DNA of 64,000 nt, taken from positions 1-64,000 of the IMG/VR virus record IMGVR_UViG_3300003877_000001; one strand, given 5' to 3'. Both the position numbers and the translations under genes were made by a program. Of this stretch, positions 2,363-6,108 are shown piece after piece. Each line of letters starts with the position of its first letter. Within the stretch, counting starts at the first letter, position 1. Under the pieces are notes generated by a model, which saw nothing but the letters and a program-made list of their open reading frames with translations, ran no database searches and was not told the origin of the DNA.

Positions 2363-2371
2363 TTTTATATG

Positions 2372-2458
2372 TTGCGAGTGCTGGACTCGAACCAGCGTAA
2401 ACCCAAAAGGGACTCCGTGCTTATGAGACAGGCGAGATACCAACTTCTCCAACTCGCT
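2372..2458 (-). tRNA. tRNA with CAU anticodon (Met-like), atypical long variable arm, CCA not encoded
   Basis: Cloverleaf by eye: acceptor GCGAGT/ACTCGC with a 1:72 mismatch, D arm GAGA-AGTTGGTA-TCTC, loop CT-CAT-AA, T arm GCTGG-TTCGAGT-CCAGC; 87 nt. Confidence 0.9.
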
Positions 2459-2559: not shown

Positions 2560-3380
2560 TAAAACTCTGAGACTACAAGTTTAACAATAGGTCTTGAGAG
2601 CATTATCTTATTCTCTCATTGTCCAATGCAGTTGCCCACATTATCCTATCATCGCAAGTTAATTACGTTAACCAATCGTATCGTTACATTTTCTACTGCT
2701 GTTTCATATCTATCTCACCCGTTTCAGAGCAAACTAACTAGATCGACTAGAATAAACATCCACAACAAATATTCGGATTGGCTACCGACTTACCCCACCT
2801 CAATGGCGAGTTATGCGACTTTCTAATGCAACGCCTAAACACTTGTGCTTTTATATTGATATAAAATCTGTTTTGATCTAAATTCAAAAGATTATAAAAT
2901 TTACAGCTAATTCGGAGTTTTGAAGTCGTGGTTTAGGATGCAGTTGCCCGTCTTTTGAACGATCAATGCTGCACGACTCCATGCGTATACCAATCCGCAA
3001 TTAATAACCTTCCTGACTTATTTCCCCACCCGAAGATGGTTGTGTTCGCCTTACGGTTTAAGTTACCAACTGGTTGCTTGCCCTTCATCCTTGGTAGGAA
3101 TTATGAACATCAACCCTACATTTACATTTATTGTATTTTCATACTCAACTATGCAGTCCTTTCTGCATAATCTATGTCTTCATCTGGTTAGACCGTTAGG
3201 CACTCCCCAAAAGAAGGAAGATGTATTGTAGTGCTTATTTGAGGTCGCAAGCGACCCGATAGAGTGGACAATTAGCATTTCCACCTAACCCTTATCCCGA
3301 TTTCTCGGTTTATCTTTTCAATACCCGAAGGTAATGAACTTACTATCCGAAGACAGCAGGGAGCATAAGCACCCCCAAAA
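2560..3380 (-). ncRNA. Large structured non-coding RNA (GOLLD-class candidate), boundaries approximate
   Basis: No credible ORF; GC-richer than flanks; many stems capped by UUCG/GNRA loops (TAC-CTTCGG-GTA, CCGA-GAAA-TCGG, CC-GTAA-GG, GTAT-GAAA-ATAC, TATGCAG/CTGCATA); long-range helices GTGCTTAT/ATAAGCAC and AGTCGTG/CACGACT; directly upstream of a tRNA. Confidence 0.75.
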
Positions 3381-3402: not shown

Positions 3403-3516
3403 TTTTCTTAATAAGTGGAGTTGATAGGTCTTACACCTATACCTGCACCTCACAGGTGCTATACTAATTTATACTACATCCCCATAATTTATTACCTTTA
3501 CTTCTTAAAGGTGTTG

Positions 3517-3653: not shown

Positions 3654-5276
3654 TTAATTATTTTTCATAACATTTTGACTTTCACGTTGTTGTCTTAATA
3701 TTTCAGTTAAATCTGTTTTAGATTTATCTCCAATATCTTCTCCTTCGTGAAGATTTTTCAATATTTCTTTACCATTTTCAATAGCAATAGGTTTAATGTG
3801 TTCAATATTTTCATTACTATTATTTATTTCATCTGCTTCATTTTCACTACGTGCTTTATATCTTTCACTTATTTCTTGATTTAAATTATCTATTTTTTCT
3901 TCAGTAATTGTAGGTAAATTAATTCTAGTAGGATCATTAACTGGATCAGTCAATGCTATTTCCATAGTATCATTATTAAATATACAATCTTTAAATACAT
4001 GTCCATCACTTGCCATTCTTGCTTTTAGAATAGCAATATTAGCTTGTCCTATTAATTTTTGTTCTTGAGTTTTTGCAACAGACATCAAAAAATGTGTTTT
4101 TTGTGCACGTTTTATATTACCACCCATTTGACCTGTATCTACTAATTCAGAACCAAATCCACTTCTATTAGTTTGAAGTGCAGTCCAACATGGAATATCT
4201 AATTCATGTGCCATACCTTCAAATGATTTAACTATTTGAAGTTCACCAGCATTTTGATCTAAACCTCTTGTATGTGGTTCTAGGACATCCAAATAATCTA
4301 ATATTATAATATCAAACGATAACCCAAATTTCTTTTTATATCTATTAACATATTGTCTAACTTTAGGCATTGTGGTATCTTCCTGCGAAAATTTCTTTAT
4401 TATTAATTTACCAAATATATTTTCTTTGTGCCAATCAATAATTTTATCATTTACCTTAACTAGATTATCATCCATTTCAGATAGTGGGATTTTAGACCAT
4501 TTAGCAAAATGTTTTCTCCTAATATCATCTTCTTTATCTTCAAAAATAATTTGTAAAACATTTAACCCTAAATTATATGCAGTATTTGCAATATATGTTA
4601 ATATTGTTGATTTACCAACACCTGATGGTGCTAATATAATTCCAATCTCACCACCACCGAGACCACCATTAGTTAACGTATCAATACCTTTAATACCTGT
4701 TGGTATTGGTTTACGAAATTCTTTAGTAAGTGCTCGACTAATATTATCCATAATTTCGATACCCATATCATCTTCATCACCAATCTCACCGATTTTCTTT
4801 AAGTCATTTTCAACATTAAATAAAAATTCATCACTATTATTACCTTGTTTAACTTCACCTTGAATATAGGATGCTATTTTTCTATATTCTTGTTGTTTAA
4901 TAAAATTTAATGTTTCCTTTTGAATTGTATCACCATCATGTTGAAGTTCTTTATTTAAAACTCTTTCGTTCCAATTATTTAATTGGATTGCAACTGCATC
5001 CAATAAATCAATTTCAATAGGGTCATTTTTTTTACTGAATTTTCTAATTGCATGTAAAATACTTTTATTTTGTAAATTAGGTGGTTTACCATTTAATTCA
5101 AAATATTGTTGTATTATAGAAAAAAATCTTTTAAATGTAGCATCATCAAAATACGATATTTCTAATAATGGAATTGATTTTTCTGCAAATTCTGGTTCAC
5201 TTACTAATTGCCATAAAATTTTTAATTGAAATTCAGCACCTAAATATTGTGAAATAGTATATTCATCTCCCATCAT
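3654..5276 (-). CDS. dnaB: Replicative DNA helicase (DnaB / T4 gp41-like)
   Basis: IPTGIKGIDTLTNGG, Walker A APSGVGKS, IIILDYL, TALQTNR. Confidence 0.9.
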   Translation of the reverse strand: MMGDEYTISQYLGAEFQLKILWQLVSEPEFAEKSIPLLEISYFDDATFKRFFSIIQQYFELNGKPPNLQNKSILHAIRKFSKKNDPIEIDLLDAVAIQLNNWNERVLNKELQHDGDTIQKETLNFIKQQEYRKIASYIQGEVKQGNNSDEFLFNVENDLKKIGEIGDEDDMGIEIMDNISRALTKEFRKPIPTGIKGIDTLTNGGLGGGEIGIILAPSGVGKSTILTYIANTAYNLGLNVLQIIFEDKEDDIRRKHFAKWSKIPLSEMDDNLVKVNDKIIDWHKENIFGKLIIKKFSQEDTTMPKVRQYVNRYKKKFGLSFDIIILDYLDVLEPHTRGLDQNAGELQIVKSFEGMAHELDIPCWTALQTNRSGFGSELVDTGQMGGNIKRAQKTHFLMSVAKTQEQKLIGQANIAILKARMASDGHVFKDCIFNNDTMEIALTDPVNDPTRINLPTITEEKIDNLNQEISERYKARSENEADEINNSNENIEHIKPIAIENGKEILKNLHEGEDIGDKSKTDLTEILRQQRESQNVMKNN

Positions 5277-5407: not shown

Positions 5408-6073
5408 TTAATTATTTAATTGTTGATGAGTTTGATTACAATAATGAGATTTAATCATTTTAATATAGCTTCTATCAGTTGATTTTTCAATCATTTCACT
5501 TCTTCTATTTTTGGATAGTTCTCTTATTTGATTTACATATAATCCATATATGTTAATCAAAGTGTAATCATCCCACATATGATTAACATCTAACTCTTTT
5601 AAAGATTCATGTATATCATCAATAATTTCATTAATAATTTCTCTTATTTCAATAGAAAATCTCGAAGCAGGGTTATAATTATCAACATAAAATTTCCTCT
5701 CAACAATAGGATTATCATTAATATATAAACCAAATTTACATTCAATACCTTTTATGGTTTTATTACCATATTTATATTTAATAAAATTTGGTTTAGATAG
5801 TTTATTTTCATCAATACAATATAAATCTATTAATTTCTTATAATTTTCTAAGAAATCATACCCATAATCCTTATAATTTAAATTTCTTCCTGACATAACT
5901 CTTTGTAGATTTTGAATTATTTCAGGAATGGAATCCCGAATGTCAACCGAATATCTAATTATGGGATTAAAAACATCTGCATTGAATATTCTTTCAATTA
6001 TTATGTCTTTACCTTGATAAAGGACAAATTTGAATTTATTTGTATGTGATTTTTCTTGTACTTTTTCAGTCAT
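5408..6073 (-). CDS. Hypothetical protein in the replication block
   Basis: 221-aa ORF with its own host-type promoter. Confidence 0.7.
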   Translation of the reverse strand: MTEKVQEKSHTNKFKFVLYQGKDIIIERIFNADVFNPIIRYSVDIRDSIPEIIQNLQRVMSGRNLNYKDYGYDFLENYKKLIDLYCIDENKLSKPNFIKYKYGNKTIKGIECKFGLYINDNPIVERKFYVDNYNPASRFSIEIREIINEIIDDIHESLKELDVNHMWDDYTLINIYGLYVNQIRELSKNRRSEMIEKSTDRSYIKMIKSHYCNQTHQQLNN

Positions 6074-6108
6074 TTTATGTGTGTGTTATTGTTATAAATT
6101 GTTTAATA

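Follow-up and report, generated by a model that had tools for sequence, protein, structure and literature searches.

A phage-encoded initiator-like tRNA carrying an extra hairpin arm in its variable loop

The locus described here lies near one end of the first 64 kb (64,000 nucleotides, hereafter the window) of IMG/VR virus record IMGVR_UViG_3300003877_000001, a 325,854-bp jumbo phage genome that is rated 100% complete by CheckV, has a G+C content of about 27%, and derives from a hydrothermal-vent metagenome, the only run found to hold the whole stretch. Reading along the minus strand, a DnaB-like replicative helicase gene (3654-5276; Pfam DnaB_C, phrog_19) is followed by a GOLLD RNA whose conserved 3' domain occupies 2564-2981 (Rfam RF02032, 171.8 bits against a gathering score of 150) and whose variable 5' domain extends upstream to about 3409, as judged by nhmmer matches to L006 and L008, two of the loci fetched for comparison. 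A 105-nt spacer with only a weak local fold (2459-2563, z = -2.0) and no terminator separates the GOLLD RNA from a tRNA(CAU) gene at 2372-2458. The tRNA is followed by a perfect 18-bp hairpin (2313-2362, -29.9 kcal/mol, z = -7.6) that begins 10 nt after the discriminator base, and by an intrinsic-terminator-like hairpin with a T run (2230-2260) that is the likely end of the GOLLD-tRNA transcription unit. A 354-aa open reading frame with no Pfam or PHROG match lies downstream of the tRNA. The genome carries 46 tRNA genes called by ARAGORN, nearly all of them in an island at 105-158 kb, and the tRNA of the window lies far outside this island.

The tRNA was called as tRNA-Met(cat) by ARAGORN (2371-2458, minus strand) and was matched by the Rfam tRNA model RF00005 at 2372-2458 on the minus strand with 42.5 bits, against a gathering score of 29. 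It is 87 nt long and no CCA is encoded. The acceptor stem (AGCGAGU at 2452-2458 and ACUCGCA, with pairing to 2373-2379) leaves A1·A72 unpaired and continues with G2:C71, C3:G70, and G4:C69, while the discriminator is A73 (2372). The D arm (2434-2449) has a 4-bp stem, GAGA/UCUC, with A11:U24 and an 8-nt loop containing GG, as in E. coli tRNAfMet, and is of the class I or initiator type. The core letters are of the G15/C48 type. The anticodon stem-loop (2415-2432; CCUGU / CUCAUAA / GCA-C-GG) presents CAU at 2423-2425 in the 7-nt loop CUCAUAA, on a stem composed of C-G, C-G, a bulged C (2417), U29-A41, G30-C40, and U31·G39. In place of a class I variable loop of 4-5 nt, an 18-nt variable region (2397-2414; AG-U-CCC / UUUU / GGG-U-UU, then AC) folds as a hairpin with a 3-6 bp stem (A-U, G·U, U·U, C-G, C-G, C-G) and a UUUU loop. 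The T arm (2380-2396; GCUGG / UUCGAGU / CCAGC) is normal. The observation made in an earlier note from the sequence alone, namely a tRNA(CAU) with an initiator-like 1:72 mismatch and D arm, a bulged C, and an 18-nt variable arm, is thus confirmed, with one correction: the three G:C pairs typical of initiators are not all missing, as the note had stated, because the middle pair G30:C40 is kept. The upstream giant RNA mentioned in the note is the GOLLD RNA.

Two paralogs of this tRNA, t19 and t20, are found in the same genome at 116501-116587 and 118720-118804. They share the D arm, the anticodon loop, and the arm sequence, but differ by compensatory changes in the T stem (GCUGG/CCAGC, GGGGG/CCCUC, and GAAGG/CCUUC across the three genes) and in the anticodon stem. 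Each of the three genes has a different unpaired 1:72, A·A in the window and U·U and C·U in the paralogs, which argues that the mismatch itself is selected. All three deviate from the three consecutive G:C pairs at 29:41, 30:40, and 31:39 (the 3GC motif), and t20 also lacks G30:C40. The only other CAU tRNA in the genome (111651-111723) has G1·U72 and C11:G24 and is elongator-like, so that the phage has three long-arm initiator-like genes and no conventional, class I initiator-like one. The 584-aa open reading frame between t19 and t20 has no Pfam or PHROG match.

Relatives of the neighboring helicase in IMG/VR (29 loci) carry an initiator-like tRNA(CAU) in the same downstream position, which is 73-76 nt long in some and 84-90 nt long, with a long arm, in others. 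A search of phage tRNA sets for CAU combined with a long arm had been proposed in the earlier note, and was carried out here as a pattern scan of IMG/VR. A pattern that included the full D arm returned no hits, whereas one requiring only A21-U24 of the D arm, the loop YUCAUAA, a spacer of 20-30 nt, and the T-loop returned 97 stretches. From the loci fetched up to that point ARAGORN called 72 unique long-arm CAU tRNAs, and a separate parser found 73 across all fetched loci and the window's genome. Among these 73, position 1:72 is a mismatch in 50, a weak A-U or U-A pair in 23, and never G:C, C:G, or G·U; A73 is present in 59 and G30:C40 in 68. None of these features was conditioned on by the scan, although the pattern fixed U22-C23-U24, such that A11:U24 in the family is partly a matter of ascertainment. 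The arms range from 12 to 22 nt and differ greatly in sequence between subtypes, with 45 distinct, self-complementary arm stems across the 73 members, and the helix is kept by covariation across the family.

In an alignment of 14 sequences of the window's subtype (subtype A, alignment A3), 94.5% of cells form pairs, 11 pairs change on both sides, including 4 of 5 in the T stem, and none of 500 shuffles does as well. G2:C71 and G4:C69 are each present in 14 of 14 sequences and C3:G70 in 12 of 14, the other two having U·G. An extra base in the anticodon stem is present in 12 of the 14 (C in 10, A in 2) and the pair next to it covaries (C-G in 12, U-A in 2), which settles the bulge reading over a C·C mismatch. 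The base of the arm (AGUCC...GGUUUAC, including the U·U and G·U) is as invariant as the D arm, while the acceptor and T stems drift with compensation. Assembly error and a pseudo-tRNA had been named in advance as outcomes that would overturn the observation. Both chance and assembly error are excluded by the two paralogs, by the many homologs, and by a contig of a relative from an independent marine metagenome that spans 2380-2559 with 17 differences and keeps the arm, its single indel being a 1-nt insertion inside the arm's loop; the source reads themselves were not used to confirm the arm. The identical sequence also occurs in a second IMG/VR contig (L005), and the paired, compensating stems do not resemble those of a pseudogene. 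Absence of transcription had been named as a further refuting outcome, and on this point there is no expression evidence, since the two RNA libraries examined cover only the GOLLD part (contigs of relatives at 2714-3317) and short tRNAs are poorly captured in such libraries. Selection on the gene is nevertheless evident from the compensatory changes described above.

Isotype scoring with tRNAscan-SE, suggested in the earlier note, was replaced by pairwise alignment against every tRNA in the genome and in the fetched loci. The window's tRNA is closest to other long-arm CAU tRNAs, followed by class I initiator-like CAU tRNAs of related phages (score 32.5, even though they lack the arm), and only then by Leu, Ser, and Tyr tRNAs (at most 24); the nearest relatives outside the long-arm group are the same with or without the arm. 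The 4-bp D stem contrasts with the 3-bp D stem of the genome's own tRNA-Leu(CAA). The tRNA therefore has the long, stem-forming variable region of class II tRNAs but neither an anticodon for Leu, Ser, Tyr, or Sec nor a class II backbone, and is read as an initiator that gained an arm rather than a class II tRNA that changed its anticodon. It is also unlike tRNA-Ile2, in which 1:72 is paired and position 11 is a pyrimidine opposite a purine at 24, and the phage has a separate tRNA-Ile(UAU) for AUA; modification of the CAU anticodon was not examined. The incomplete 3GC motif is a trait of the whole phage initiator-like group: among 78 unique class I tRNAs found with the same pattern, 77 lack a G:C pair at 1:72, 72 have A73, and only 2 have GGG/CCC. 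The class I form of the pattern is at least as common, with at least 120 stretches, so that the long-arm form is a large minority.

The family is widespread in the tRNA islands of uncultured, mostly large phages, and also occurs in tRNA arrays on contigs of bacterial and archaeal genome records. In one genome per species of GTDB the pattern hits only 16 places, of which 14 hold an ARAGORN-called CAU tRNA, nearly all inside a cluster of tRNA genes, while the other two (L138 and L148) gave no tRNA call. Several of these places are on single 360-425-kb contigs labelled as Pacearchaeota or Paceibacterota MAGs, and one of these contigs, at 425,361 bp exactly as long as an IMG/VR phage contig, is probably a misbinned phage. 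BLAST of the GOLLD-tRNA region and of two family subtypes against 50,697 GenBank phage records found no long-arm relative, the only hit being one 71-nt class I tRNA-Met. No published description of initiator tRNAs with long arms was found in full-text searches, only some of which targeted long arms directly and which did not reach most subscription journals, so that prior description is not excluded.

The phage genome encodes a peptide deformylase (134982-135431), a full-length IF3 with both IF3_N and IF3_C domains (122407-122901, in the tRNA island and 3.6 kb from t20), and a CCA-adding-type nucleotidyltransferase. No formyltransferase (Fmt), MetRS, or RtcB was found in the genome, so charging and formylation must rely on host enzymes. 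Stop-codon recoding was examined because of a tRNA(CUA), but reading TAG as sense adds little, the standard code covers 86-97% of the first 100 kb, and no other code is claimed.

The explanation considered somewhat more probable than not is that this is a functional phage-encoded initiator tRNA of the tRNA-fMet type, into whose 5-nt class I variable loop a stable hairpin has been inserted. In this view, the tRNA is transcribed on the minus strand, probably together with the upstream GOLLD RNA, is cut out by host RNase P and 3' processing, and receives CCA from the phage's or the host's CCA-adding enzyme. Host MetRS would then charge it through CAU and A73, host Fmt would formylate it through the unpaired 1:72, G2:C71, C3:G70, and A11:U24, and it would start phage proteins at AUG in the ribosomal P site. 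The mismatch at 1:72 together with 2:71 and 3:70 are the determinants given for Fmt (PMC5389676), CAU and A73 are the MetRS determinants, and all known MetRS and Fmt determinants are kept in the window's tRNA. Its A11:U24 contrasts with elongators, which have a pyrimidine at 11 and a purine at 24. Class I synthetases such as MetRS leave the variable region facing solvent, and the arm should therefore not block charging. The analysis itself establishes the gene, its fold, its family, its initiator determinants, and the lack of an obligatory tie to GOLLD or a general one to IF3, whereas charging, formylation, use in initiation, and the purpose of the arm are inferences, none of them having been assayed biochemically. 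Initiator function is considered likely, although two of the three canonical G:C pairs are missing, 31:39 is U·G in the pyrimidine:purine orientation, and in E. coli such stems initiate poorly.

The purpose of the arm is unproven. The leading, and still tentative, hypothesis is that the arm, together with the remodeled anticodon stem (bulged C, U31·G39), makes the molecule structurally unlike the host's initiator and lets initiation continue when host defence nucleases cut or deplete the host's own tRNAs. Resistance to host anticodon nucleases was one of three readings offered in the earlier note, whose interpretation as a whole is only partly supported, and this is the reading that stays plausible. 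It fits the presence of a long-arm tRNA-Lys(UUU), next to a normal copy, and of a long-arm tRNA-Thr(UGU) in the same genome; of 47 further long-arm tRNAs in the fetched loci with Asn, Ile, Asp, Cys, His, Lys, Thr, Gln, Glu, Trp, or Ala anticodons (and two left unassigned by ARAGORN); and of about four structurally different initiator-like CAU tRNAs in one array of a 425-kb phage. Defence nucleases that cut tRNA-fMet, tRNA-Met(CAU), and tRNA-Lys(UUU) are documented (PMC10264068; PMC13056530). Nuclease resistance was not measured, the host is unidentified so that its initiator and nucleases were not compared, and in human cells Schlafen 11 prefers long-arm (type II) tRNAs, such that an arm could even be a liability. 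The invariance of the base of the arm within subtype A, in turn, hints at sequence-specific recognition by something unknown.

Other accounts of the arm are considered less likely. A neutral or stabilizing expansion, in which the hairpin adds folding stability to a tRNA that may lack host modifications at positions 46 and 47, has no recognition role, and persists because MetRS, Fmt, and the ribosome tolerate it, would suit the varied length and sequence of the arms between subtypes, the long arms on many other isoacceptors in the same phages, and the interchange of class I and long-arm versions at one syntenic site, but is doubtful given the invariant arm base within subtype A and the retention of three copies in one genome. 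It is also unlikely that the incomplete 3GC motif, the bulge, and the arm near the elbow are matched to the phage's own IF3 in a partly private initiation system. IF3 proofreads the anticodon stem and its N-domain touches the tRNA elbow, and the phage IF3, the peptide deformylase, and the deviant stems of all three genes make this attractive for the present genome. However, IF3 was found in only 2 of 45 other phage records that carry long-arm initiators or are helicase relatives, and in none of the 11 records that are at least 90% complete, while the scarcity of GGG/CCC among class I phage initiator-like tRNAs shows that the stem deviation is tied neither to the arm nor to IF3.

The two remaining readings of the earlier note are held to be very unlikely. 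A chimeric tRNA with altered synthetase identity is not supported. A long arm is the main SerRS determinant and A73 is a LeuRS and TyrRS determinant, so that LeuRS, SerRS, or TyrRS could be attracted and AUG started or decoded with another amino acid, and nematode nev-tRNAs with class I anticodons are indeed charged with Leu (PMC3333845); no charging was assayed here, but the backbone is that of an initiator, and the conservation of MetRS and Fmt determinants across the family would be pointless if Met were not attached. A structural partnership with the GOLLD RNA is likewise not supported as an obligatory relation, whether as partner or cargo of the GOLLD nanocage or as a processing signal in which RNase P cleavage defines the GOLLD 3' end. 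GOLLD flanks subtype-A tRNAs, on either side, in four lineages (the window and the fetched loci L041, L038/L049/L122, and L110), GOLLD env-38 lies downstream of a Met-tRNA, and tRNAs occur in GOLLD linkers (10.1101/2024.12.08.627333). Against this, t19 and t20 lie about 114 kb from the genome's only GOLLD match, with BLAST of the GOLLD region against the rest of the genome finding only the tRNA paralogs and Rfam finding no second GOLLD-like RNA beside them. A complete 321-kb and a 97%-complete 425-kb phage genome with the same tRNA subtype gave no GOLLD match, helicase-related phages have the tRNA at the same site without GOLLD, and L006 has GOLLD but no such tRNA. Co-transcription, and use of the tRNA as a processing mark for the GOLLD 3' end, are still possible as local extras.

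Initiator tRNA is among the most conserved RNAs, and a long variable arm is a textbook identity mark of only Leu, Ser, Tyr, and Sec tRNAs, so that a family of at least 70 distinct initiator-like tRNAs with such an arm is unexpected. Together with the long-armed versions of many other class I tRNAs in the same loci, it suggests that large phages remodel tRNA architecture in ways that annotation pipelines hide behind the label tRNA-Met. A broader and more tentative possibility is that phage tRNA islands hold an as yet undescribed architectural class, comprising initiator tRNAs and alongside them Lys, Thr, Asn, Ile, Asp, His, Cys, Gln, Glu, and Trp tRNAs, that gained a class-II-like arm while keeping class I identity elements and that act as defence-proof or factor-specific replacements for host tRNAs. 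This would signify that the rule restricting long arms to four tRNA types fails systematically in large phages. The family raises the questions of whether MetRS, Fmt, IF3, and the P site tolerate the arm and whether it protects against tRNA-cutting defence systems, could supply natural scaffolds for orthogonal initiator tRNAs, and sharpens the known but unexplained link between GOLLD RNAs and Met-type tRNAs.

Several known systems resemble this tRNA in part. GOLLD RNAs lie in phage tRNA islands, sometimes next to a Met-tRNA (10.1101/2024.12.08.627333; PMC6582537), although the architecture of the adjacent tRNA is not described in the literature read and the present subtype also occurs without GOLLD. 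Phage tRNAs proposed to evade host anticodon nucleases (PMC10264068; PMC11555353) are likewise copies of targeted tRNAs that differ from the host versions, but the differences described there are point changes in the anticodon loop, whereas here a whole arm is added and the anticodon stem is bulged. The allo-tRNAs and other odd cloverleaves from metagenomes are non-canonical architectures from uncultured bacteria and their phages, with 8/4 or 9/3 acceptor/T branches and Ser identity (Mukai et al. 2017), while this tRNA has the ordinary 7/5 branch. The nematode nev-tRNAs, class II tRNAs with Gly or Ile anticodons, share a long variable arm on a tRNA whose anticodon belongs to a class I amino acid, but are Leu-type backbones with a changed anticodon (PMC3333845), whereas here the backbone is an initiator and the arm is the novelty. 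Natural initiators with an incomplete 3GC motif in mycoplasmas and alpha-proteobacteria (PMC5389676) also keep strictly only G30:C40, with the first and third pairs replaced by A-U-type and G·U-type pairs, yet they retain the purine:pyrimidine orientation (au/GC/gu), where 29:41 and 31:39 are here pyrimidine:purine (U-A, U·G), and have neither bulge nor long arm. With the bacterial initiator tRNAfMet, exemplified by E. coli metZWV/metY, the phage tRNA shares CAU in the loop CUCAUAA, the lack of a strong 1:72 pair, G2:C71, C3:G70, G4:C69, A11:U24 in a GAGx/xCUC D stem, A73, and G30:C40, and it differs in the 18-nt hairpin arm that replaces the 5-nt variable loop, in an anticodon stem of UA/GC/UG with a bulged C instead of GC/GC/GC, and in A·A rather than C·A at 1:72.

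Long variable arms in this phage are not confined to tRNAs with a CAU anticodon. Elsewhere in the phage genome, outside the window, a long-arm tRNA-Lys(UUU) of 84 nt (126399-126482) lies next to a normal 74-nt copy, and a long-arm tRNA-Thr(UGU) of 86 nt is found at 147062-147147. In the other loci retrieved, 47 further long-arm tRNAs carry Asn, Ile(UAU/GAU), Asp, Cys, His, Lys, Thr, Gln, Glu, Trp, or Ala anticodons, two of them left unassigned by ARAGORN. The long-arm CAU family itself includes a second subtype (e.g., in retrieved loci L037, L042, L063, and L134-L147), which has a short arm of the GC-GAAA-GC type, 12 nt in length, and three rather than two nucleotides between the acceptor and D stems. 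This second subtype is the form found in tRNA arrays on Cytophagales and Sphingobacteriales contigs, including one of 7.7 Mb. Dense phage-type tRNA arrays are also carried by the single-contig metagenome-assembled genomes L139 (labelled Candidatus Pacearchaeota, 425,361 bp) and L143 (labelled Paceibacterota, 362,763 bp). L139, which holds seven CAU tRNAs, about four of them initiator-like with different structures, has exactly the length of the IMG/VR phage contig L102, and both L139 and L143 are probably jumbo phages binned as cellular genomes.

The phage genome additionally encodes a full-length IF3 with both domains (122407-122901), a peptide deformylase (134982-135431), and a CCA-adding-type nucleotidyltransferase (290985-291368, in a 596-aa frame), although IF3 is rare among the other phages that were checked (2 of 45). 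A tRNA with the anticodon CUA at 157717-157787, labelled ‘Pyl’ by ARAGORN, is a possible amber suppressor. Reading TAG as sense raises the cover by long open frames only slightly, and cover by frames of at least 120 aa dips to 0.38 at 200-225 kb. A tmRNA-like match at 113656-114012 of the phage genome (9656-10012 of retrieved locus L002) scores 43 bits, just under the gathering score of 47, while in another retrieved locus, L067, a clear tmRNA (69 bits) lies 190 nt after a long-arm tRNA(CAU).

Within the window, a perfect 18-bp hairpin at 2313-2362 starts 10 nt after the discriminator base of the long-arm tRNA(CAU) (-29.9 kcal/mol, z = -7.6). No T run follows this hairpin on the strand of the tRNA, and it may serve as a processing or RNase III site, or as a terminator for the opposite strand. 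Across positions 2714-3317, contigs from two marine-sediment metatranscriptome libraries match the GOLLD region at 90-99% identity. This suggests that relatives of this GOLLD RNA are transcribed in those sediments, though it does not prove it, as an RNA library can hold DNA and no silent stretch was included as a control.

In retrieved locus L008, a tRNA-like element at 5940-6080, downstream of a GOLLD homolog, has a good acceptor stem (GGGGGAG/CUCCCCC) and T arm but contains about 85 nt of inserted sequence in the middle, and is not called by ARAGORN. In the window, a cloverleaf-like element on the minus strand at 3413-3483 sits at the 5′ edge of the GOLLD region, between the helicase stop and the GOLLD 5′ domain. 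Neither ARAGORN nor Rfam calls this element (E > 1), and its fold is not distinct from those of shuffled sequences (z = -1.29). It is composed of a 5-pair closing stem (7 positions if A·A and G·U are counted) and three hairpins, one of them a triloop, and may be one of the degenerate tRNAs that have been reported in GOLLD loci.
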